A stretch of 64,000 nucleotides of DNA from Entomortierella parvispora E1425. Lineage: Eukaryota; Fungi; Mortierellomycota. Within the stretch, counting starts at the first letter, position 1, and every line of letters starts with the position of its first letter. Below, one piece after another: positions 12,501-62,257 of this stretch. A model generated the notes under the pieces. It was given only the letters and a program-made list of their open reading frames with translations, did not search any database and was not told the origin of the DNA. Where the stretch lies: positions 3,410,001 to 3,474,000 of the forward strand of contig BQFW01000002.1 in the NCBI GenBank assembly GCA_020891255.1. The letters run 5' to 3'. The position numbers and the translations under genes were made by a program.

Positions 12501-14278
12501 ATCATTCTCGTCAGCCATCTCATTTCTTTTCGAGTCGACGGCTCTCATTTGTGTGCCCCTGAGTCGGGTTGTACCCACATCTTGGTCGCGTTGTTGTGGA
12601 GACCAATGCATGTTCTTGTATGCAATATACAACACAGAAAAACTGATGAGGCGGCGGGCAATCATCATCATCATCATCCTGCGGGTCTTGTGCTACCAAC
12701 CTCATCTCTTTTCTCTTTTCTCTTTCTGATGTGCCTATTTTTAATCCTTTCTCATCCCTTGGCTTTGAGCGTCCTGAAGTGCTCACCGATTGAGCATCAG
12801 TGCGCAATGCACGGCATGTTTGCCTTTGAGTGTTTACACCCGCTATTCTCTCTGTTTTTCATTCTTGGACTCAAAACCTGATGAACCAATGGATACATCA
12901 TTTGGATGGCAGAGGGAGGAAAAGGGAAGGGGACAGGCCTAGAGGAAATTATGGATGCAGTAAAAATCACCGGGTCTCCGGGCTTGTTGTATTTCCGCGT
13001 CCTTTTTTTTTTTTTTTTTTTTTTTTCGTCTTCTCTGTGAGGCCTCTCAGGCTTATCCAAGAACCTCCAGTCTTTTTCATCTTGGCTCGTTACAATACAC
13101 TTTTTTTTTTGTTGATGCCGGTTGTTTGCTCTGTGCGGTGCTTACCGAGTTGTGTGACACCCTTTGGTGCACCTCCGTCGCGCCCGGACGCGTTTTCCCC
13201 TCGTACACCTTGGAATTTTTTCTTTTTCTTTCAACATGAAACTTGTGCACAAAATAAGATGCAATATTGTCACCCTCCACCACCCCCTGGACAGGATGTA
13301 GAAGATTTTCCCGAAGGAGCTTGTTCTTGGTGGTTTAGCATGAACTAGTAAAGTAGAGTGGTTTTTTTTTGGGGGGGGGGGGGGGGTGAGGTAGAAGAGG
13401 GGTGAGAATGGTGCAAGAAAAAGATGGCACTCGGGGACACCCACAGCACCAAAATGGGCAGACGAACAAATGGAATCTCTTCCGCGGAAGAGAGTGGGCA
13501 CAAAGGGCGAAGATGATGTGACGTTGAGAGGAAAGGAACAACCTCACTCGTTTTTTTTTTTTTTTTTTTTTTGCGCCATCCTGCAGACTCTGCAGTTAAG
13601 GCCAAAGCCGCACGTCGCCAATTCGCCATTGTGTGCGTGCGTGTTGTTTTTCAACCAACTGTCAGAGCCAAGCAGGGACTTGAGTGCTCCCTAGTGCCCA
13701 AACTTTTTTTTGCTCTGCAATCGAATTAGTGCTGAGGCCCAGAGCAGCCGAAGCAAAGTCAATCCCAAGTACCTCTGAATAGAGATCGGCGTCCGTTCTA
13801 TCGGGGGTTTCATACAAGTTCAACACAGCCAGAGTCGAGTTGGTCTTGGACGCTTCTGGCAGCACCCGAGTTCCTTTGTGTGATCAGTTCGATTTTCAAG
13901 TCCAAGGTGGTCAAAAGCCAACCTGGCCCAGAGTTCTTACGACAGCGTCAGAGCTTCCTTGTCTCCAATCGAGTCGGCACTGCAGTGAACGGCGTCGATA
14001 ACAGGGCCGCCTGCCTTGGATTTGATTTGGCAAGTGTTTCATAGAACACACCATCCAGCATCGCGCTGACCCTAGCATCCTACATCCTCTCCTTTCCTCG
14101 TTTTGACACAAACCGTTAGACATACGATACACTCCCACAACAAATGTAGGTCACCGTGTCACTCAATTGGATCCTGCCCTGCTTTGCTTGTGTTGTTTAT
14201 TGTCAAGGCTGTTCACTGAAAACTCTGCTATAAGAGCATCCAGTTCATGGGGTATTTTCCCCCTTTGAAATGGATCGT

Positions 14279-16043: not shown

Positions 16044-16698
16044 TGGAGGGGATGCGAGCAGGAGTAAGGTGAAAGAGGAAGGAAAGACGGACTGAATGAA
16101 ACTGAATGAACGAGCGAAGGAGTCAGCGATCAGAAGAAGGACAGAAAGAAATAAATAAATTTTCATGTCCGCCCACCGTCCACGACGATCGATTGTGTGA
16201 TGCGATGGGACGCTGACTGACTCACTCTTTTCTTTTTCCAGCGGTTTTTTTTTTTTTTTTTTTTTTTGGTTTCTTCTGGCGGCCATTCTTCATCCTTCAT
16301 TCTTCCGGTTGCGGTTGCTGGTAGCTGTTGCCATGTCCCTTCCCTCCTCCCTGCCTGGATGTCCCCTCCTTCCCTATCCCTCTCCCTTTCCTCTTTTGCA
16401 CGTTGCGCAGCCCTATACGGCGCACATCTCGTGGCATCACTCCCGGCGTCATCCTCCACAAGGACTTCGCAGAGCTCCCCTGGGGCTCGAGCGTTTCCCC
16501 AACCCCATCCGCAAGCAGCCAATAAGGTTCATTCAGAGTTGCCCTATTGTCCCCCACCTCCCATTTTGCTTCCCTGCCCTGTGGCGGTGTTTGTGCGTGG
16601 AGGAAAGACATTCTAGCGCCACCAATCTTGAGCTGAAAGCCCTTTTTTGTGTTTATTCGATATGTACAAAGTTGCATCTTTCTTTCTCTCTTTTCTTT

Positions 16699-21700: not shown

Positions 21701-22269
21701 GTTTGATGTGGTGGTCCTGTAGGCTGCGGTGAATTGTTTGCGTTTCGATGGATTGCATTTCCTTGGTCAGTCAAAGATACACTATCGGCCTTTGGAGCGC
21801 CCGATCGAAGCGTCTGATCATCAACCATCCGCTGGCCATCTTGCGAGAGCAAACTAGTTGCTTGGTTATTGGACGGCGAGGAAGCTCGGTCGGCATCCGA
21901 AGAGAAAGGATGAGGGCCAGCACCGAAATAAGGAGACTGCTGTCCATGGAACATTTGCTGTTGCATCATGTGGTGATGTTGCTGTTGTTGCTGCTGCATC
22001 ATTTGTGCAAGGGCTGGATGCATAAAGGGCGGCTGGAAGGGTGAATTTGATCTCTGATGGGGGTTCATCCCCTGGCCTAGTTCTCCGTCGTCATTGGGGC
22101 CAGGTCCGGGGAAGGCATGCATGGGGAACGTGGATTGTTGTGGAGGCAGACCCTCCTGGTAATGTTGCTGCAACTGTCGACGGGGATCCTGGCCTGATGC
22201 AAATGCATCCCGCGGCAACTCTTGATCACCCATTGGTTGGTGGGCCTGTTTCGAGGGCGGCTGTGCCAT
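18716..22269 (-). CDS. Cid1-family terminal RNA nucleotidyltransferase (predicted terminal uridylyltransferase) with Q/P-rich disordered N-terminus
   Basis: PFGSSGNGLALANADMDVC (DxD at 20559-20567), ARVPIVKL, IACDIGYQNDLAIWNTRLLRAY, VKHWAKRRKINNPYTGSLS, LSSYAY-like helix and spliced IEDPFELNHNVGRPVDRFSLFTIRGEF (PAP-associated domain). First true ATG at 22269; the ORF-track start at 22323 is GTG. Confidence 0.9.
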
Positions 22270-22644
22270 TTGGTGGCGGGCTGGAATCAAAGACGCGCTC
22301 TCTGGAAGGGATGCGCGCAGCACACAGACTCTTTTACAGACACACGCGCTGGAAGGTGAAGGAAAAGGAAAACAGGGACCTCAGTGGAACGTAATGGGGT
22401 GATGTTGGCCTGCAGGAGTCGAAGCGCGCGCAATGTGGAAAAGAAGTGTGCCCTTGCAAACGCATGCATGTGCCTCCCTGCTTTGGCTCCAAAGGGTGTT
22501 CCCTCGGACAAGGCATGAGTCTGCCGCACAAGCCACCGAAGCTCAGCCCGCCAAGGAAATGCGCCACCAAAAATTTGGAAGTCACTCTGAAATTTCGGAA
22601 CGGATGGTACATGGTCCAAGCCAAAAGAACATATATCACAATAA

Positions 22645-22907
22645 GGGTCTACGCTGCTCTGTGGGAGTTTTGCCGCTCCATTACACTTTGCAAGCCGGGT
22701 TCGACACCCGGTGTAGACTCCTTATGTCAGGTTATGCAGTATGACGCCCCTCCCGCTGTAGGCCTATCCTCGAGGGGGGCGGTGAGCCTTCACCCCTGCG
22801 CTGGCCAGCAGAGTAAAGGGTGTGGTGCCTATCACTGGGGGGAGTCGAGCGGTCCCATTCGGGGCCGCTTGAACTCTTGTTCCCGGGGCCTAATACTTTC
22901 TTCTTTT
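22645..22907 (+). ncRNA. Candidate Pol III structured RNA, copy A (tRNA-like head, hairpins, oligo-T end); family unknown
   Basis: B box GGTTCGACACC 22698-22708 in a 5-bp T-arm stacked on a 9-bp stem (GGGTCTACG/TGTAGACTC); degenerate A box CTGCTCTGTGG; strong hairpin 22842-22876 whose G-U pairs favour the + strand; T4 at 22904-22907; colinear homology with 59005-59295. Confidence 0.6.
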
Positions 22908-24033
22908 CTTTTCACCACATGGCTCATGGTTCCCACTCCCATGTCTCCATGGCATCCCTGATGTCACCAGAACTCTCTTGTCCTCAATCAATCAATCGCG
23001 TACCACACGCAATTTTAGTGGCGCGACTTTTTTTGGGCTCAGCTCACTGCCACGGAGGTCAACGTTCATGGTGCCATGGTCAATGCTTTTGGGAATGGAG
23101 ACAAGGCTGATTGTTTGCGTTTTCACTGCTGTTTATTATTACTTTCTTTCACTCTCAACTACTCTCGAAATCTGGCCTGCTCTCAGTCAACTTGTTTTCC
23201 TCCTTCTCTTTGACAAGCAAGAGTGAAACAAGCCGTGCAGGGCGCGCCAACGAGCAGGCGGCAGGCCATCGCACCCCAATAATAGTTTGCATGTACCATA
23301 AAGGACACGTCTTTTTTGGTTTGTATGGACAACCCCACGAAAACCATACGCTTTTGCCAAAGACTGGTTCGGAAACCAACCCAAGGACTCTGTTGGACCA
23401 TGATGTTGCCTGAGCAGAGCACCTATAAACACCTTCTTCATAAACACCTCCAGTATTGCACAGTGAAAAGGGGGGATAGGAACCAGAGGGCCACAATTCC
23501 CGTCTCATCCCGGTGAGAAAACAAAGATGCGAGCGGATCACCTTCTCGACTTTGTAGTGGACATTTGCCCTTCCCCTCTCGAACGTAGACCGCGACTTTA
23601 TCTACTTGTCCAAGAGGGTTGAAGAAAGGACGGTTGAAAAGGATTGCGATGGTGCTGGCACACAACCTTCTTATACGGTCAACACCCAACGGACCCCCGT
23701 TATGGAGGCTGCACCCAAGTTCCAGGTGCCGTTACAAGACGTACACCCGGGAAGTCCGTTGATTCTCAGGATGGCGCAGCAGAACGAGTCATGTCCACAC
23801 CCAGCCTTACCTGGCAGCACATCGCAAGTAATACGCAAGTCTAGGGGAAGGGGAAATGGAGCGGAAAGGGGGAATGAAAAGGAAAGAACAGGTGGACGAT
23901 TGGAAGGGAGGTGGATGGGTGGAATGAATGAAAATGAGGACAATGCGATTCCATCATGGAAAATTGATTTTTATTTTGTTGCGTGGTTGAAGTTCTCGGT
24001 GTTGATGCTCTTTGGTTCGCCTTGATGAATGAA

Positions 24034-26336
24034 TCAATGACCAAGGAGGGCTGCAAACGTCTTGTTCATGAACATGCCTTCAGGGTCGTACTTCCTACGG
24101 ATCGCCTCAAACTCATCCAAACGACCGCCCGTCTGCTGTCGCAGATAGGGCACGATGCCTGGGACATGTTCCCACATCTTGGCCCAATGGGGTCTATTCA
24201 CGATTAGACCGAACAATGATATTAGATACTGCATCTCAACAATTGCCATAAAGTTTCAACCTCTCCTCAACTTACTTTGCTTGGAACTTATCCATCCAGT
24301 ACTTGCCTACTCGGGCAGAGAAATCCTCGTAGCCCTTAGTATTGATCACAGAGAGGATCTCGATCATACAAAAGATCGCGTCTTTGTCTTCGTCGTACGC
24401 GCTTGACAAGGTCATATCCGATGCCTTGACGAACCTCATCTCCATCGTTAGATTCAGCGAGTAGTTGTTTTGGCCTGCCTCTTTGTAGATCTAGGAGAAA
24501 GATTGCACCTTCCGTCAACAGCAGCCATTCAGGTACTCTGGAAATGTACCGTCTCAACATCAGCAGCAAACATACCTGGTCAATCACGTAGTTCCAAGCT
24601 AGTACCACATTCTCAAAGTTATCGTCGGCCTTGAAGGCCATCTCCATATCCAAGCCTACACATAGATCGAACAAACGAAAGCATCAGTGTCTGTCAAACA
24701 ACAGCAACTTTGTCTCCTTTGTCTGATTCCCACCCTCTTGTCCCACAACTCGATAGCTGTGCACCCCTCCCTTTCGGTCTTCAATGTCGAGCGTTCCTCC
24801 CATGAACATGAATTGTAGACTTACAGGGGATGTTGTCAATGCCGGCCTGGTAATGAATCGCGTCAGGAGCTTGCAAGACCTTTTCGGAATCAGACTTCAT
24901 CACCGTGAAGATCAGGCAATCCAAAAACGGGGTGCAGCTCGGGTTCTGCGCCATGAACTCGTACAACTTGTCTCCAAAAGTTGTCTCCAAGTTTTGAGTG
25001 ACCTGCAAAAACTTTTCTTGGTCGGGTGATACCGTGACAGGCAAGGTCGATCGTTGCCATTGCTTGACCCACAAATGATCGTTGGAGGCACCTAAACCGG
25101 AGGTGTTGAAGGGCCAGTAAAAGATCTCGGTCGATTGGTTCCCGAGAACCATGGCCTTGATCTTTGGACCGCCGACCTGGGGGGATTCAAAGTAGTCGCT
25201 CAATGGAGGGAATGTGTCGGTCTACCCAAAACAATTTTGTGGGGAAAGGTATAAATGTGCAAAAAAAAAAAAAAAAAGTGGATTTTCATGAACGAGCATG
25301 TTAGTAAAGTTGTTTCTTCTCTTTTCGATCACACGAAAAGAGACGGCTACTCTATGTTACCATGTGCAGGTTGAACATTGGCTCAACATTCATAGTGTAG
25401 CTGTAGATGATCCCGAATAAACCGAGGTTGATGACCGCAGCTGCAAACTCCTTTGGGTCCTTTTCCCTTGAAAAAGTGTTTAAGACCCCGTGGGCATCGA
25501 TGATCTTGACTTCGCTCACAAGGTCTGGGAGCGTTCGGGTCTCGGTTGCTGCTCCGTGCTAAAGAGAAAGAAAGACAGGGAGAACGAGAAAAATAAGAAT
25601 CGGGGTCATAACTGCTATTGTGGGGCGTGCTGCTGTGTAGTGTGGAAACAAGAAGACTGATCATGAGTACAACGTACACATCCTAATGACAGGATACCAC
25701 CGTATCGGACCTAAGATCAGGGTTTATGTAGAAGGAGGGGGCATTTTAGTTTTCTCAAAGAATCATGGCCTAGCCGCACCCATAATGGCTTACAGAGTCC
25801 AGGACAACGTTGGATGGCAAAGCGAGGGGTGGGTCATGAGCACGCAGCAAGTCGTCCAAGTCCTTCACCAGGACACCGGTTTCCATCTCGACCGTCCATA
25901 CATCACCCTCGACATGAACCGGGGCATAGATCTTTTTCATGTCGTTCACTATGACCAAGTAGCCGTCGCTCTGAATTACTGATGAAGACGACCAAGTGTG
26001 ACCTGTGGCCGCACATCGGATTTTTTTCTTTGCCTCAGTGGCCTGTTGCACAATCGCAAACAGCTCCGTCAGAGTCGTAGGGTGGAAGATCTGAGCTGGC
26101 ACACAAGTCTGGTTGCCAGCCCAATTGGACCACGCGTTCGGATTTGGTGCTGCCATGTTGCGATTACTGTTGTCGTTGTCGCTAGAGGGGATTACGATGG
26201 GGTGGGCAGCCACTTGAAGCCCCTCCACCTGGGAATCGACAGATACACGCTCTCGACTTTTTTTTCCTTCCTTGGAATGGGAAGTGAGATCAATGATGTC
26301 CTTTTTCAGACGACGGATGAACGTGTTGAAGGTCAT
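24034..26336 (-). CDS. FAD-linked oxidase, D-arabinono-1,4-lactone/L-gulonolactone oxidase-like
   Basis: WSNWAGNQTC, RCAATGHTWS (covalent-FAD His motif), VRYGGILSLGC|HGAA, NLGLFGIIYS, TMEMRFVKAS and C-terminal RPHWAK; at least six introns. Confidence 0.88.
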
Positions 26337-32514: not shown

Positions 32515-32545
<31 letters not shown>

Positions 32546-32659
32546 CGCTGTTTTTGCATTTGTAGGTACAAATACGACGAGATCTCTCCTTGCGTCTGCC
32601 TCACGCGGGGGAGGGCATCCCGGTTTGACTACGAGATTCTCAGTAAGGACCTTTTGTGA
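30752..32659 (+). CDS. NAT4: N-alpha-acetyltransferase 40 (NatD, histone H4/H2A N-terminal acetyltransferase); missed by the ORF track because of small exons
   Basis: Spliced translation: ..FAVDLVESNMKEL|YMKSKDGWCREDKEDEMEDELSRYLI..VAMVHFQFVEEE..EVAYC|FEIQVTPGYQRKGIGAYLIGLLESIGKQAAMDKVMLTVFK|ANTSAIKFYIDQLK|YKYDEISP..DYEILSKDLL, stop TGA 32657-32659. Has the QRKGIG acetyl-CoA motif and the NAA40-type YEILSK tail. The MPK first exon at 30752 is less certain. Confidence 0.88.
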
Positions 32660-37739: not shown

Positions 37740-38104
37740 AAGGAAAAAAAGAGAGAGAGAGCGAGAGAGAAAAAAAAAAAAAAAGAGTGAAGAAAACGGC
37801 CGAAATTTTAAGAAATAGCTCAGTGCTACTACCAGCCGCCACATGTCTTCAAAGGCATTGACCAATAGATGTAACGAACAAAGAAAAATAAACCAAACCA
37901 CATATACCCGAGATCCATTCTCCGCTGCTTCCCTCTTTCTCTTCTTCTCTTTGCTCTTCATTTTCAACGCGCTCAAAAACCACGTTTTTTTTTTTTTTTT
38001 TTTTTTTTTGGGCTTTTTCCCCCCTCTGTCGCATGATAAACAGATATATTCCGATTTTTTTTTATATTCTATGAAAAGAGAAAACAATGAAAATGATGAT
38101 ACTT

Positions 38105-43601: not shown

Positions 43602-43632
<31 letters not shown>

Positions 43633-53821: not shown

Positions 53822-55523
53822 ATGTCCACCCCCATCACCGCCGGAATGAGCTCCGACTCTTCCAAGCAGGACGTCCTGCAACTAGAGATATCAAGAACCG
53901 AAACAGCGTCTGCTACCGAAGGTATCCTCCGCTCGCGCGACCTCGACACTGAACACGGCTCGCACCAGCATGTTTCAGGAAGAGGATCTGTCGACAAGGC
54001 CATCGCCGGCGCCACTACTACCTCTGCGGCAAACCCTACCGATGCGGTGACCAGCGCCTTTGAAATCATACAACTTTCAGGGGAAGAAGCGCGGGCCGAG
54101 CAGGAGCGTGCAGCCGAGAAGATCAGGCTAAAGACCCGGCCCATGACAAAATTCAACACGATCCGCCGTAATATTAACCAGGCACTGCACCACGATGAGC
54201 CAGGTTCAGGATTGGAACCGAGCGAGGCTGCTAACTTGCAGTCTCAAACAGTTTCCCCCGAGATTTCCTATGAAAGTTCCGACTTCAATCTACAGGAGGA
54301 CCCAGCTTCTGGACTTCCTGTTGATCACACCACCGCCAATGACCATCAGCAACCGCCGTTATCGGATCAAGAAGAAGACGCTACCCCCAAGAAAGACTCA
54401 AAGCTCATCAGCATCGAACCGCCTCGACTTGTGGATGCGGAAACAGCCCCCGGAGACTCGCGTTATTTTCAAGGGCCAAAAGATCCTCCCCCCGAAGGCG
54501 ACTTTGTGTACGACTTCTTATATCAACATGAACGAGGAGCATTCTTTCTGGGAACGCCTAATTTCAGCTCCAAGTCCCTCCTACCGGTTGACCCAGACGA
54601 ATGGACAAACAGCAACTTTGAAACTTCGGCCATGGATGTTTCCGATTTCGAGGTCCCTGATCCTAGCTGGGAGTGGGTCCACAAAAGCTGGCTCGTGGAT
54701 ATGACTGGAGATGTCGATGAGGATGGCTGGGAGTATGCCATGACATTCCATGGATCGCCTTGGCATGGAAACTATGAAGTGTTTCGATCATTTGCTAGGA
54801 GAAGACGATGGCTTCGACTCCGGAAACGGAAGGTACGTATCCCTTAATTCTTTGACTGACCACGAGTTACAAGGGAGACCAGTATGGAATGTGAACCTCA
54901 CCAGGGAAATTCATCGAAATAGGGCAAAACACTAGGAAAGCCAGAAAGGTTGCCTGGGCGATCATACCCAGAATCCATCAACTCGGCCACATGGTCTAAG
55001 CTGGATATTTCCCGGTACCTGGACCAACCATCGCCCTTCCCAGATGGAGAGATTGAAGACAAGAGCTCCATGAAGAAGGCGCCCAGCAGCATGGCCGGGC
55101 CGAGTAACCTTTCTGTACCAGCTCCCTACAGAAAACCAGTGGATCTCTACAAGATTATGAAAAAAGGCCGATCCGACAGAGAAAAGCTTGCCTACCTGGC
55201 ACAGTACGTTGTTCGGTACCCAGGCGAAACAGACGATATTGATCAACGACTGGAGAAGTACCTGAATCTGCTGGACTATGAAACTTCTCGTCGCGAGTTT
55301 TTATCGGTAAGTTTTTATCTCTGTCGAGCCCAAGTGCTACCAGAACACGGAGCAAACCTGACCGACCTCTACATTGTCCCAACCCTTTAACCTTACTTAG
55401 GTGATGAGTGCTTATGGACGCAAGGAAAGTCTCGCCCACGGTGCGGATCAATTGCAATTCTATTCGGACCAGCGCTTGCTCTCATCGGCAAAAGTTGTCT
55501 CACCTTCACGGATGCACTCTTGA
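53822..55523 (+). CDS. Dysferlin (DysF/Pex24-type) domain protein, Spo73/Mug65-like
   Basis: LYQHERGAFFLGTPNFSSKSLLPVDPDEWT..VPDPSWEWVHKSWLVDMTGDVDEDGWEY..WHG..RSFARRRRWLRLR, followed by spliced exons with SDREKLAYL and LQFYSD; stop TGA 55521-55523. Confidence 0.8.
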
Positions 55524-57222
55524 CTTCCAAGAAGCACCTATCTAGTATAACTCTATATACCACCATCTTCAACTGGATGAACGACAAGACCCCAAGACAA
55601 ATAAATACGGTTGTCAGACCACTTCAGGACCAATGCAAACCTACATTGGCTTGAACTCTAACATTGAGGCATCGCTCCCGAGGATTGTTGACTACCACCT
55701 CTGTTTCCGCCTTGCCGGGAGTCCTACCTAGTCTTCCCCCCGTTTAATAAGGCCACGAAAGGAGTATCACCAATGCTTAAAAGAGATACCCTGTAGATCC
55801 TAGCGTGTCCTACATCCTGCCTTCCGTTCTTTTTTTTTTTTTCGGTCTGTTTTATTCCGGCGGCAAATAGACCTTATTTCTAGAAATATTTTCCGTTTAG
55901 CACTTTTCTTGCAACTCGATGTAGATCCGTTTCTGCGCACACAGTCGTCCTTGATAGACAGATGGTAGGCACAATCGCGAGAGATAGGCAATACATCCTA
56001 CCGAAATAAGAGACGCGTTTTGGTCTCCTACGATTTTTTTCTAGTAGGAAGGCCACGCCCAGCTGATAACGTTCCTATCGAGTATCTTTGTGTTTGTGTT
56101 CAATTATGAATGATTTGCGTTTGATTGCAATTTCGAGAGGGAGAGGCATGCCCTGGATTTACACTTTTGAATATGGTTTCTCAGACCGGCAAAACGAAAG
56201 AAATGGAAGGAAAAACAACAGATTTTGGGTGCCAGACCAGGTAAAGGGCTCTCACAGATTTGAAGCAAACAGAAATCCCGGCGAACTCAATTCTCCCTCC
56301 TTTCCCTCTCCACACGACTTGCGCGCAGAAACTTGTTGTTATTGTTTCTCATTCTTTAACGCTGAACTCCGGGATCGCCTCTTTTCCACTCTTTTTTTTT
56401 TTTTTCTTTTTATCTTTTCAATGTCCCTTCAACTCTCTTTTCGTTTTTGCCGGCAATGGAGATGGGGTGTATCAAAAAAAATGGGTTTGGTATCTCCATG
56501 TTAATATGATTGCATTTTCATATTCGGTTTCGCTTATATTGATGGGAGAGGTCCATCTCCTTTGTGTTGTACCCCTGTCTCCCTTTCCTGTTCCTCATTT
56601 CCTCTGGGTTCATTTCCAGTTCAGAGATCCTCGTGTGCAGCCTCGTCTCATTATTGCATACCAGAGCCATGGGATTTCACCCTCGTTTCCTGACGATTTC
56701 GACAACAGTGATATTGAGGTCTCCCCGTGGCAATGAGTTTTCTAAAAGTACCACCTGCACGCCGCTCTTCATAGCGAGAGGTCCCGTTCCTATGGCTCGG
56801 TCAGCAACAGCTTCTTTGTGACTAGGGCGGTTTTCAGCACATCAGTTGCTCACTGCGACAACGACTTCAATTTTTTTTTTTGAGTTGTATTGGCAATGGA
56901 GTTGTAAGCAGCTGTTCTTTCTGGTCAGGTCATCCTGTTGGTCAATAGACACTGAACTTTGAGAGAGCACCTTGGGAACTAAGTAGCAAAAGGCAGGTAT
57001 CTTCTTTCTGTGTTGATAGACGAAAGAAACTACCGCGCTCATACTCGCGCACCCCCCATAACACCGTTCACCGAGAAGGAGAGAGGAGGTCATACCCAGG
57101 CGAGAGAGCAATTGAGACCGAACATGAATAAATAGTAGGAGTGTTCCCTCGGTTTTCTGATCTTTATCAACCCTCTCAGATCCCCTTCCAACACCTACCC
57201 TACTCCACCTCTTTTTTCAAAA

Positions 57223-58405
57223 ATGATGATGATGAAAACCACCCTTGTCGCCACCGCCTTGGCTTGCTTGTCTGCCATGACTGCCCAGGCCCACGTTGGT
57301 CTCAGCAACCCCTGCGGCCGTTACCAGCCTAACGCTGGATGCCCCGCTCCCCCACGTAAATAACATGAAATACAGGCTAATTGGCCAACTGCAGGCGCTT
57401 GGAGTATTTTCATCGACGATCATCACGTCTTTTGTTCAAGGATACTTACTGACAATCCATTCTCCTTTTTCTATTGTCATAGCCGGCCAGGGCGTCGATT
57501 ACGATATCAACTCTCCCATTGGAACCCAGCAGTCTATCAACGCCCCCATCTGCAAGGTACGTTCATCACTCCCTCCTCCCCCCCCCCCAAAGAATCTTGT
57601 TGAAAAAAAAAAAATTCAAAAGAAACTCTAGGTTAAGTAATTCAATCGTTCCTTTTGACATCTCTAGCACACCGTCCCCTACACCACCCGCACAGTCTAC
57701 AAGGCCGGTGATACCATCAACACTGGCTACTCTGTCGGCGCCTCCCACGGCGGTGGACATTGTCAGTGGGCTCTTTCTTATGACGATGGCAAGACCTGGG
57801 TTGTCATCAAGACCATGATCCGCGACTGCTTGAAGGGCGTCAACGGTGGTGACAGCTACTCTGTCCCCGTCCAAATCCCCAAGGATGCTCCTTCGGGCAA
57901 GGTCACCTTCCAGTGGATCTGGAACAACGCTATTGGCGCGCGTGAGATCTACTCCAACTGCGCTGATATCGAGATCAAGGGCCAAGATGGTGGCTCGGTC
58001 TCGGGTGTCGAGCCCCTCTTCGCCAACTATGGACCCAGCGCTCCTGCTATCCCCGAGTTCCCTAACCCCTCCGATGATGATAAGCACGAGTTGTTCTCTC
58101 AGAGAAAGGCCATCACCATCAAGGTCGCCGGTTCTGGTGGAAACCCCGCTCCTCAGTCCCCCAAGCCTACTTCCCAGCCCGCCCCTATGCCTACCTCCAA
58201 GCCTACCTCCATCCCCGTCCCCAAGCCTACCTCCATCCCCGTCCCCAAGCCTACCTCCAACCCCGCCCCCAAGCCTACCTCCAAGCCTGCCCCCAAACCC
58301 ACCTCCAAGCCCACCCCCACCCCCACCAAGAAGCCCACTCCCAAGCACCCCAGGCGTACCCACAGGGCTAGATACCACAAGGCTCAGCACAACCAGTGCA
58401 ACTAA
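57223..58405 (+). CDS. Secreted lytic polysaccharide monooxygenase, AA11-like (chitin-type), with Pro/Lys/Thr repeat tail
   Basis: Signal peptide ending AQA, then His (57292-57294) as mature residue 1; second His in SHGGGHCQ (57746-57748); [21 protein letters not shown] with Tyr at 57950-57952. Compare AA11 signatures HGGGSCQ and NREMYMNCA. Two introns. Confidence 0.85.
58160..58345 (+). repeat. Coding 24-nt tandem repeat (PKPTS-x-P-x units) in the LPMO tail
   Basis: Repeated cccaagcctacctcca units encoding [32 protein letters not shown]. Confidence 0.9.
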
Positions 58406-59004
58406 ATAGGGAAAAAAAGAATTGATCGTACTTCTTCCTCCCCTTTGTCTCTGATCGTGTCCATGTCCCTTTGAATAAACGCGCCCCGCCTTTGGACATG
58501 CGATCCGCTGGCGTGGTCGTTTTTCAATACCTACTCACCAATGCTTTTCCAAAGCACCATTTAACAATGATACATGTACCATCCTCAACTGCCCTGCGCG
58601 CTGTCAGCCTCCCCCAGCTTTCCTGAAATCGCGCACTTGAAGTCTTGGGGGAGAAAGGGGATGGGGGTTTGGTGAATCGTGTTTGATGAATGAACCCACC
58701 TCCACGCTTTGGAGGTCCAGCCTCAGATGACCTGAAGAGTGGTAAAGTCACTGATCCTCTCACTTAAAGACAATGGCATTGAGCTTTCCTTCTAATCAAT
58801 GACTGCATGTCGTGAGCATGCCTCACAGAGACAGAAGAGATGACTCTGCAGGGACCAGTGCAGAAAGAGCGAGAAAATCTGGGACCTAGTCCACAAGTTG
58901 CCCTTTTTTTTTGGGCGTGCTTCGCCCATGCCCCCATGGTCAATGGTTCAGGTCACGTGAAAAATCGATACAAAGGGCATTGACCGCAAATTTAATTGAG
59001 TGAA

Positions 59005-59295
59005 GGACTATGTGTAGTGTAATGGGAATTCAACCGCCTATGAAGCTGCACGCCTGGGTTCGAATCCGGGCTCGGGTCTAGACTTTACTCACCATTTGCT
59101 ATATACATACGTCTCTCCCCGGTATATAGGATGGCCTCTCGGGAGAGCTGTGAAGTTGGTACACATGCCCGTTGGTACGTGATACCCGTTGGTACGTCAT
59201 AACTGCGAAAAGCGGCGGCGTAGCATGCTCATGAAGGGGGAGTCTAGTCACCTGGAAAGGGTGGCTAGATTTCTTGCTCCAGGATACTTCTTTTT
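59005..59295 (+). ncRNA. Candidate Pol III structured RNA, copy B (tRNA-like head, hairpins, oligo-T end); family unknown
   Basis: Consensus A box TAGTGTAATGG 59015-59025 and B box GGTTCGAATCC 59057-59067 at tRNA-like spacing, but acceptor, D and anticodon stems do not pair. No T4 run until TTTTT at 59291-59295. Hairpins 59111-59148 and 59236-59275; colinear with 22645-22907. Confidence 0.62.
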
Positions 59296-60374
59296 CCTTT
59301 GCTTCTTGACAAAAAGGAAAAAAGAGAAAGCCTCGATTGAAGATCTTCAAGGTGTGATCCAAATGTTTGGTGGCGTCTTTTTTTTTTTTTTTTTTTTCTG
59401 TCTGGGCTCAACAGTGGGCATTGCGTTCAAAAAGTTGCAGGTGCATGCAATGCTGAATGCCGCCAGGAATGAATTAAAGTTGACCATTAGCATGGTTGTT
59501 GAGTTTTGCACTCTGCTTTCTGAGTTTTGAAAGTGGATACGGTGGGCACCGTTCGCTTTCACGCGCCTAAAGGGTGTTGAGGTGTTGAAAAAAGGAAGCG
59601 CAGCCGGCGCGGGGGAACCTTGTAGCGTTGGAATGGCCTGGACCCAGCGATATGAGGGAATCGCGCTCTGACCGCGACACTGGTGCTCAGGTCCTTCCCA
59701 ACGTTCGCGATGCTCTTTTTGCAGATGGACGGTCTCTGCTAGGAACGTCTCGCCGTTTTTGCCTTGTCCTCTTCTTTTCTTTACTTTTTTGAGCACCATA
59801 CCCAAAGCCCACGATCATCAACCCATAAAGATCAAGATAGTGTGAAGGATGTCCAGCTGTTGCAACAAAGCCTGACCCGGTCCCCAAGATCTCAGAGATC
59901 TGCAAAGAGTATCTATGGAAAATTGTCCGGAATTCTTTCGCGCTATACTCGAGTTCACGGGGAGGATGGGAAAAGGAGAGGGGAAGGGGGAGCGAGGAAG
60001 AGGTGCAGGAAAACGGAACAAGGATCAAAGAACGTGGAACGAGGGCTAAGAGTTAGCCAGAGGGATAGGAGATCATGGTTGAGAAGAAGGGAGAGGGGTG
60101 AAGGAAAGGAGTGGACGTGAGGAAGGGGGTGAAGAGGTAAGGGGAGAAAAGAGTGGAATGTGATGCATCTCAGAATGGGTCACGCAGCTTTGAGGGCACT
60201 GTCGCATGGAGCCGAGGTAAGCAGGGAGAGAGGTAAGGTGGCTGACTTGCAGGTTGCAGGAGTCCTTATTCTTGACGTCGACGTCCCTGGTCTCCACGCA
60301 CTCACCGGATGCTACTGATGATAGAATCTCGTTTATTGCAATAACAATACGTTCAAAATTGGATCAGACAACAA

Positions 60375-62257
60375 CTACGCACTCTCCGACTGGCCGCTTT
60401 CACCTGCAGCCGCAGCCGCAGCGGCGGCCGCTGCCATCTCAGCTTCCCTTCCTTCAATGGTCTCGCCCTTGATCGTATCAATGATATCGCCCTCAATGCT
60501 CAAGAAGCCCACTTGGTTGCAGACGCGAACTACTTCCTCTGCCAACTCGACGCTCATGTTGCCAAGAGACTTGTTCACATTCTCCAACGATCCAGAAATG
60601 ATGGCCTCCTGGAAATCCTCTGGAAGAGCCGCAAAAATCTCGTGAATCTTGGGATCGGCATCGGCTGGGGGTCCTGTGATATGGATCTGTGTGCCTGGAT
60701 CAGCAGCCTGAAGTTGGATCGTTTCTACACCAGCAGGGGAAGCAATCTCAGGACGCTCCTGTGCCATGACGTTGCATCGTTCCTTGATTCGGTTGTATGT
60801 GTCCTTCCAGTCATTTTGGAAAATCTTCAGTGCTGCGTGAGAGTTGTCACGAATTCTATTGTGGTTAACATAAAAAGTTGAAAGATGTCAGTGTCAAGCA
60901 ATCCCTGTCCTCACTTGCCTTCCTATTGTTCCTCTCTCGTCTCCATGTCTTTCATCGAATCCACGAGCGTGTTATTATTTTTACCTGTGGAAAAAGAGAC
61001 CGACGCCATCCTTGCCCAACTGTGCGCAGTACTGCAAGATGAGGGCCTGGTGGACACAGTTGGAGGCATAGGCCTCATCGCCCTGGATTTGCGACTTGAA
61101 CGCCTGCGCCATAATTTCGTCCGAGTACTTTTGAGTGGCGAGATAGGGATGCTTGGAAATGTAGACCAAGGATGCGTCAAAACCCTTGGTGTGTGAGAAC
61201 TCCATTGCCGTCTGCGACACTTCGACTTCATCATCGTCGGAATCATCCGAATCAGCACTTGCGCTGCTTGCTGCTGCGGCCTTTGACTTTTCAGCGGCAG
61301 AAACTCCTCCCTAGGATAATAAGAGACGTGTCTTGGTTGGTACAAAAATATGATGTGATGCCTCCATTGGATGCACTTTTCTAGCAGTTACTTACAGCGC
61401 TTCCAGGGTTAAGAGTCTCAATCACTTTGGTCTTCTCAACAACCTTCTTTGGCTGCTTGACGGGCTCCTTGGGCGCAGGGGTGGCTTTGGTGACAGCCTA
61501 TGGAACAGCAGATCCATTTGAAAAAGAAAATACTAGTTAGTGAACGATTCGATCTCCACTGACGTTGTTCCAGTCGCTTGTGCCCTTTTCCTTGTAATCA
61601 CTAGAAAGCATGCGAAGATGGCATTGGGAGGGGGGGGGGGCAACCTACCGTCTTGTCAAATCCAGTGACGAGCTTGTCAGAGGTGAACTTTCTCTTCTCG
61701 ACCGTCTCCAACTTCTGCAACTGCTGAACAGTCTCTCTGTACTTCTTTTCGAGGTTGTCGATTTCAGCGTCGATTTGATCTTCAGTCTGAGCGTTTTCGA
61801 CCATAGAAGAGCTACTCTGTTGTATCCTGCCAAGCTGCTTCTTTAACGCCTCTGCCTCATGCTTCAAAGCCAAGATCTTTGTCCTGCGAGCATCGCGCTC
61901 GCGATGGAGCTGCTCCTGCTTCCATCGGATCATGGAGCGCTTGTCAACCTAGAGTACAAAATAGAGTCCACCCAAGATCGTTAGTCCATATGGTCTTGTT
62001 TAGGAGAGGTGCGGAAGTCTGGGGCAAATAATCAAAAGCCGTGGCGTAGGTATGCAGCAATATAAATCCTCCGCAGTTGGGGTTTGACTTGCTGCATACC
62101 CATCCAATATTGACAACACGCCTTGCAGTAAAAACCCAAACAATAGCGACACAAAGAATGAAAGAGAGAGCGATGGTCGTACGTTAGGATGGCATTCAAT
62201 GTCCGAGTCATCCGAGACCTCAAAGTCGTCCCATTTGGAGTAGTCGATGGCAGACAT
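60375..62257 (-). CDS. CDC37: Hsp90 kinase co-chaperone Cdc37
   Basis: MSAIDYSKWDDFEVSDDSDIECHPN (CK2-site SDD motif)|..MIRWKQEQLHRER..; middle domain YASNCVHQALILQYCAQLGKDGVGLFF; C-terminal KIHEIFAALPEDFQEAIISGSLENVNKSLGNMSVELAEEVV. Confidence 0.96.

Follow-up and report, generated by a model that had tools for sequence, protein, structure and literature searches.

What is a sequence that keeps the internal promoter boxes of a tRNA gene on a broken cloverleaf and leads on into a series of hairpins: the gene of a new structured RNA, a dead mobile element, a relic, or a coincidence? The question is raised by a candidate Pol III unit, here called copy B, on the + strand of contig BQFW01000002.1 of the soil fungus Entomortierella parvispora (59005-59295; coordinates refer to the window, the whole 64-kb stretch of DNA that was analysed, which is 3,410,001-3,474,000 of this contig in assembly GCA_020891255.1). 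An earlier note on this DNA had paired it with a second unit, copy A, and had proposed that a tRNA gene was co-opted as the promoter or 5' domain of a new RNA.

Setting and promoter elements of copy B

Copy B lies inside a 2-kb gap, with an LPMO-like gene and CDC37 converging on either side. The flanking genes, the upstream elements and the head are as follows.

58405, + strand: stop of the LPMO-like gene (EMPS_01931), upstream of copy B
58904-58945, + strand: T9 run, then GGGC and CCATGGTCAATG
58953-58960: E-box TCACGTGA; distance to the head 47 nt, to the A box 55 nt
59007-59084, + strand: degenerate tRNA-like head (A box, loop, B box, T stem, acceptor remnant TCTAGAC)
59015-59025, + strand: A box TAGTGTAATGG, 7/9 specified positions of TRGCNNAGTGG
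59038-59044, + strand: anticodon-like loop CTATGAA
59057-59067, + strand: B box GGTTCGAATCC, perfect match, starting 42 nt after the A-box start
60375, - strand: stop of CDC37, beyond copy B

The two boxes, whose separation of 42 nt falls within the expected 30-60 nt, and the T-runs that come later give the layout of a type 2 Pol III promoter. Both had been called consensus in the earlier note, which is exact for the B box and overstated for the A box, present where it was placed as a near-consensus match. Across all five copies of the family described below, the B box is the best-kept part, and the best A box of the whole family is that of copy B. The E-box motif has three sites in the 64 kb against 0.98 expected, and since this one stands between two convergent genes, a Pol II promoter would be unexpected there. 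It is a possible upstream Pol III element, testable in an early-diverging fungus; ATCACGTGAC lies upstream of the heads in two copies from a related taxon (L010 and L012), and the E-box is degenerate in copy A and lost in a third such copy (L003).

The tRNA-like loop is present as described, and the statement that the head is not a working tRNA holds good. By direct reading, 5 of 7 pairs remain in the acceptor stem (GACTATG/TCTAGAC) and 3 of 5 in the anticodon stem, while the T stem keeps 4 of 5, with one G-G mismatch and a 6-nt insertion after it. ARAGORN called 0 tRNA genes in the whole 64-kb window, Rfam did not return RF00005 (tRNA) on copy B, whether at the gathering threshold or with E relaxed to 10, and tRNA genes were found neither in the window nor in any other DNA examined. 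A derivation from tRNA is supported by the 5' part, GTAGTGTAATGG...GGGTTCGAATCCGGGC, which resembles a tRNA from its D arm to its T arm. An ORF spanning copy B is spurious and, used as a search query, found nothing.

Hairpins, terminators and folding

Downstream of the head, the body and tail contain the following features.

59113-59147, + strand: C-rich/G-rich hairpin of 7 bp, CTCTCCC (59113) with GGGAGAG (59141)
59168-59197, + strand: tandem duplication, CCCGTTGGTACGT twice, 13 nt, period 17
59203-59215, + strand: small hairpin CTGC-GAAAA-GCGG
59236-59283, + strand: conserved block GGGGGAGTC, 13-pair terminal hairpin (59242-59270), conserved block TCTTGCTCCAGG
59243 and 59260, + strand: terminal hairpin arms, TCTAGTCACC with GGTGGCTAGA
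59291-59295, + strand: T5, the first T-run
59359-59429, + strand: tail, with the hairpin CCAAA-TG-TTTGG, GGTGGCGTC, T20 (59378-59397) and GGGCTCAAC

All three hairpins that had been predicted (the C-rich one, the small one and the long terminal stem) lie at the positions claimed for them. The first has a counterpart CCCCTC/GAGGGG in copy A, from which it differs by one pair changed on both sides from C-G to U-A and one changed from U-G to U-A; these pairs were counted by hand, as the register of the MAFFT alignment is off by 2 columns. The small hairpin has its equivalent in CTGC-N8-GCAG, present in copy A as well as in the sister copies, and the CCCGTTGGTACGT duplication is private to copy B, being absent from all other copies. 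The terminal hairpin, aligned between A and B, has 92% of the cells of its 13 pairs paired, against 31-54% when the partners are slid by 1-3 columns, and it shows three compensatory and three one-sided (wobble-type) changes. Its covariation, a level reached by 59 of 500 shuffles, is thin and suggestive only, as the hairpin is complete in only two sequences. The G-U pairs of this hairpin fit the + strand only; likewise, copy B folds on the + strand at -105.6 kcal/mol (z -2.5 against shuffles), whereas its - strand is no better than shuffles (z +0.5).

As had been claimed, there is no run of four or more T from 59005 until T5 at 59291, and the next is T20 at 59378-59397. By yeast standards T5 is a weak Pol III stop; T20 is a predicted strong one. 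Intergenic T/A runs of 20-30 nt are common in the window (12997-13026, 16245-16267, 32518-32546, 37985-38009, 43608-43632 and others), and hence T20 beside the element is weak evidence for a retroelement tail. A search of Rfam with copy B and its downstream flank, at gathering thresholds and at E up to 10, returned no family, the best hits being miRNA-like and of low complexity (E above 0.2); a known family, which the earlier note had named as what would speak against a new RNA, is thus not among the matches at either level.

Kinship of copies A and B

Copy A (22645-22907) differs in its state of preservation: its acceptor stem of 7 bp and its T arm are both perfect. It also has a T4 at 22668-22671 within its tRNA-like head, which would truncate the transcript if T4 stops Pol III.

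The kinship of the two copies, asserted by the earlier note, receives a divided answer. BLAST of A against B found nothing significant, an in-window BLAST for a second copy of B returned only poly-T matches, and a covariance model derived from four sequences of the A type gave copy A 152 bits and did not list copy B at E up to 10. On the other side, a collinear global alignment of A and B scores 198, as against 140 +/- 9 for 300 dinucleotide shuffles (z 6.1; 0/300 reach 198) and 134 +/- 15, with a maximum of 172.5, for 274 random genomic segments (z 4.2). Moreover, the second-best window hit of an nhmmer profile of A-like units is the tail of copy B (59365-59429), on the right strand and in the right order, with an E of 0.003 in the window and 0.001 in L018; this tail, consisting of TTTGGTGGCGTC, the T-run and GGGCTCA, is the sole part of copy B that the profile recognises. 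Common to both copies, in order, are GGGGGAGTC, the long hairpin and TCTTGNTCCNGG. These blocks, the global alignment, the tail hit and the synteny described below favour kinship, and the BLAST and covariance-model misses count against it. We consider copy B only a distant relative of copy A, by a link that is real but weak.

Could copy B instead be a lone B-box-like motif beside random hairpins? The failure of BLAST and the covariance model to join it to A would fit such a coincidence, as would the fact that a GGTTCGAATCC-type match alone is not rare. However, the 25-mer around its B box has zero expected matches, the collinear alignment stands above all 574 controls, the profile hit falls in the right place, and a family member occupies the syntenic position in the sister taxon, so that we hold chance to be an extremely improbable explanation.

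Upstream of the E-box, the segment at 58904-58945 resembles 23028-23085, past the strong T-run of copy A. The two share the exact 12-mer CCATGGTCAATG, which an exact-match search placed only at 23074 and 58934, both on the same strand, and BLAST found weak blocks between segment 58904-58945 and the segment downstream of copy A. It may be what is left of a neighbouring unit or of an element that was inserted.

Syntenic copies in a sister taxon

Three soil-metagenome contigs of a related Mortierellaceae taxon (L003, L004 and L005), chosen via close CDC37 homologues, have flanks that match those of copy B (window 56006-58203 at 73%; 60351-61314 at 84%), and no match to the window across the intergenic region that holds it. 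In each, the LPMO and CDC37 genes again enclose a family member, in the same orientation as copy B. The element of L003 is A-like rather than B-like. Its identity to A is 78% for the stretch that begins with the T arm and ends with the C-rich hairpin, and 74% across an HDV-like ribozyme that lies on the other strand; it is without the terminal hairpin as well as the E-box. A metagenome scan by body pattern returned seven loci, adding L010 and L012; four others (L007, L008, L009 and L013) are chance matches. L010, a locus that L014 repeats without difference, is orthologous to the locus of copy A, with flanks matching 21972-22784 and 24033-25714, and has lost about 90 nt of the body; L012 is a third family locus and may come from another genome than L003. 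The copies found thus number two in the 64 kb and three at sister-taxon loci, with nothing further in the one metagenome scan. The element is absent from two LPMO homologue loci that are not syntenic (L015 and L016, from Gryganskiella and another metagenome) and from the more distant CDC37 loci L001, L002 and L006. A spurious ORF across the L003 element, searched against 1.84 billion protein representatives, retrieved only L010/L014 again.

From this synteny with the sister Mortierellaceae taxon we judge the loci of A and B both to be old. The sequence of B's body has fared otherwise. Its conservation in a sister species, on which the earlier note had staked the case for a new RNA, is not found: since the element at B's sister position is A-like, and without the terminal hairpin, the body of copy B is left without a conserved counterpart. 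When the orthologues at locus A are compared, two islands alone rise above the rest, both with 84% identity: 22722-22771, just after the T arm and into the C-rich hairpin, and the ribozyme core. Copy B has neither.

The sister copies at A's and B's loci are 89-96% identical over about 740 bp, and the stretches compared between different loci are L003:1082-1820 with L010:1130-1752 and L003:1637-2390 with L012:360-1127. Their E. parvispora orthologues, in contrast, are 75% alike or unalignable, and A and B are barely alignable to each other. The high likeness across loci, taken with a LINE truncation point common to L003 and L012, indicates that the sister copies are mosaics produced by ectopic conversion or segmental copying. 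Such mosaicism explains the presence of an A-like copy at B's position, with the B of E. parvispora having kept the old, diverged sequence.

Similarity between paralogues takes in the untranscribed upstream E-box region and extends about 190 nt past the ribozyme; because untranscribed DNA is included, copying at the DNA level is favoured over SINE retroposition. Around copy A, a 10-nt inverted repeat, GCGCCACCAA (22562-22571) and TTAGTGGCGC (23016-23025), brackets the stretch from the E-box region to just before a T7, its left arm being also the left limit of the L010-L012 similarity. A MITE, as this repeat (GCGCCACCAA/TTGGTGGCGC) might suggest, was considered and rejected, since the similarity between copies runs past the right arm.

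Mobile-element readings

Beside copy A lies an HDV-like ribozyme on the - strand (window 23277-23173), in which a descriptor scan finds the nested P1/P1.1/P2/P3/P4 fold complete: P1 pairs at 7/7 and P2 at 8/8 positions (UGGCCUGC/GCAGGCCA), P3 is GCC/GGC, L3 is UGCUCGUU, P1.1 is GC/GC and P4 is long. Rfam RF00094 gives it 24 bits only. Conservation of the core in the sister taxon stands at 84-86%, and the copies there have mismatches in P1 and P2. The ribozyme follows a lactone-oxidase-like gene on the same strand, and its equivalent in L003 comes after CDC37. Near copy B there is none: the descriptor finds no match in 58400-60400, Rfam has no hit, and local alignment stays at background. A loose form of the descriptor also fits 54056-54142 (- strand; P1 GGGCCGG/TCGGCCC), probably by chance, there being nine such matches in 128 kb.

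The stretch upstream of the sister heads is a LINE fragment comprising the last 130 codons of ORF2, the 3' UTR and poly(A). It is 5'-truncated, 530 nt long, and placed at L012:344-900 and L003:1860-2393; against the E. parvispora LINE its ORF2 has 72% amino-acid identity (E 3e-62) and its 3' UTR 76% nucleotide identity. The conserved ORF seen there was considered as a gene and ruled out, being the tail of a dead LINE ORF2, as the absence of codon-position bias attests. The full E. parvispora LINE is situated 7 kb outside the window (L019:1-9285, equivalent to about 71.28-80.57 kb in window coordinates). Its ORF1 bears an RRM, its ORF2, 2323 aa long, has APE, RT and RNase H domains, and its 3' end, AAATGTTGC(A)n, has an A29 tail.

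These components permit a reading in which the tRNA-like part is a passenger and the real unit is a ribozyme-led, internally deleted LINE derivative on the - strand, whose 5' UTR would contain the antisense of head and body. One strand of L003, and likewise of L012, does run from the ribozyme through antisense body and head, 130 ORF2 codons and 3' UTR to poly(A), and T7 and T20 can be read as A-tails of the - strand. However, the LINE piece of L012 has its own 15-nt target-site duplication (GTGATTCTTTATCAC), which makes it a separate insertion; copies A, B and L010 are without it; copy B has no ribozyme; and the G-U pairs put the structure on the + strand, the - strand of copy B being no stabler than shuffles. 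We accordingly view such a derivative as highly unlikely.

A second mobile-element reading takes copy B for a dead copy of a tRNA-derived SINE retroposed by a LINE. In elements of this kind, such as the fungal Mg-SINE type, a head related to a tRNA contains internal A and B boxes, and the 150-250 nt behind it form a body of unrelated sequence. The family is like them in its head with boxes, its unrelated body, its several diverged and dispersed copies and the decayed cloverleaf of copy B, and the LINE 7 kb beyond the window has poly(A) and looks active. It differs in that neither A nor B is flanked by target-site duplications, their flanks sharing only T-runs and 7-8-mers. An A-rich or LINE-matching tail is likewise wanting: the LINE 3' end AAATGTTGC(A)n has no match in A or B, and the + strand end is T-rich. 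Further, the copies found, two in the 64 kb and three at sister-taxon loci, are very few, A and B are both syntenic between taxa, and the homology of the copies reaches upstream of the transcribed part. A SINE origin of copy B is, on this balance, distinctly unlikely.

A small family of tRNA-derived units and the place of copy B

The explanation we favour, and to which we give an even chance, is that copy B is a drifting paralogue that can probably still recruit TFIIIC and is perhaps transcribed. It would be an old member of a small family of tRNA-derived, Pol III-type transcription units in Entomortierella, whose shared plan would comprise, in order, an E-box; a tRNA-like head, degenerate but with A and B boxes; a body of about 200 nt of hairpins, the last a long terminal stem; a weak T4-T5 stop; and, 80-110 nt on, a hairpin followed by GGTGGCG and a long T-run. 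Members of the family would stay at fixed, syntenic places, having been spread and homogenised by segmental copying or ectopic gene conversion and not by recent retroposition. At copy B, TFIIIC would bind the perfect B box, and Pol III would start near 59003-59007 and read on through the broken cloverleaf and the body, with partial termination at T5 (59291) and full termination at T20 (59378). The RNA so predicted, of about 290-390 nt, would probably have no function of its own at this locus, where copy B may at most be a place at which TFIIIC binds in the gap that separates the converging LPMO and CDC37 genes.

This drifting paralogue has partial parallels in known Pol III loci. The RPR1 and SNR52 genes of yeast have a tRNA-like leader with A and B boxes before a different structured RNA, both in one transcript. 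Copy B is like them in placing such a leader ahead of a different hairpin body, and unlike them in matching neither RNase P nor a snoRNA nor any other Rfam family and in having a body that is unconserved between taxa. ETC (extra-TFIIIC) sites and tRNA-gene relics are intergenic, keep the B box best and retain synteny while the rest decays, all of which holds here; in contrast to them, the family of copy B also has an A box at the right spacing, an E-box and a terminator. These elements besides the B box make transcription of copy B plausible, on sequence evidence only.

Does copy B, then, work as the gene of a new structured Pol III RNA, with its tRNA-like head as promoter or leader and its body hairpins functional? 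Several observations would accord with this: promoter boxes and an upstream E-box are in place, the + strand is specifically stable (z -2.5), the terminal and C-rich hairpins show compensatory changes, family members have been kept at two syntenic loci, and there is no Rfam match. Against it, the body has neither a conserved counterpart nor a between-species island, L003 has lost the terminal hairpin and L010 about 90 nt of body, copy B has acquired its private 13-nt duplication, and the covariance model misses it. We therefore rate a working gene as rather unlikely. The earlier view of a co-opted tRNA gene with preserved boxes and distal stems survives insofar as the boxes do sit on a broken cloverleaf and the hairpins are shared with A; its further step, that a new RNA is preserved by selection at copy B, is not supported, in view of the unconserved body, the A-like element at the sister position, the body parts lost in the sister taxon, the missing between-species island and the private duplication.

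Copy B is, by our reading of the family, its most decayed member. A counterpoint to this decay is that it keeps the family-best A box along with a perfect B box and an E-box that is still intact, and these retained promoter elements could be a sign of continuing selection. It is an outside prospect that the family consists of lineage-specific Pol III ncRNA genes, with copy B still transcribed and its C-rich and 13-bp terminal hairpins binding protein; were it so, the Mortierellaceae would have an ncRNA family with a tRNA-like leader promoter behind an E-box, retained at fixed loci and homogenised by gene conversion like multicopy RNA genes.

The family itself is real and undescribed: it has no Rfam match, and in the literature searched neither a Mortierellaceae SINE nor such an element is described. 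A search of public sequencing runs found none that contains the copy B locus, the best sampled-word share being 0.04, and the reads retrieved matched it only in two low-complexity 31-mers. While copy B alone matters little, the family is of interest as a set of tRNA-derived units that persist at syntenic sites with concerted evolution.

A LINE insertion upstream of a family member

In L012 the LINE fragment ends about 50-60 nt upstream of the head and its A-box-like motif, and it is the 5' end of the fragment that points towards the head. The TRE5 elements of Dictyostelium sit 37-95 bp upstream of tRNA genes (PMC5006619; PMC3159450), a strategy described as unique to dictyostelids (PMC5006619). 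The sister-taxon fragment is like them in belonging to an APE-RT-RNase H LINE, in its target-site duplication and in its head-to-head placement at this distance; it differs in that one insertion event is concerned, in a fungal host and with a LINE of another clade, and in that copy B of E. parvispora itself has no such insertion. By this analogy, a fungal LINE may target Pol III sites. If LINEs of this kind do target Pol III complexes, then a family member was occupied at the time of insertion, as judged from this one event; and should the pattern prove to be genome-wide, LINE copies would constitute a natural map of Pol III-complex sites, showing which odd units of the present kind are occupied.
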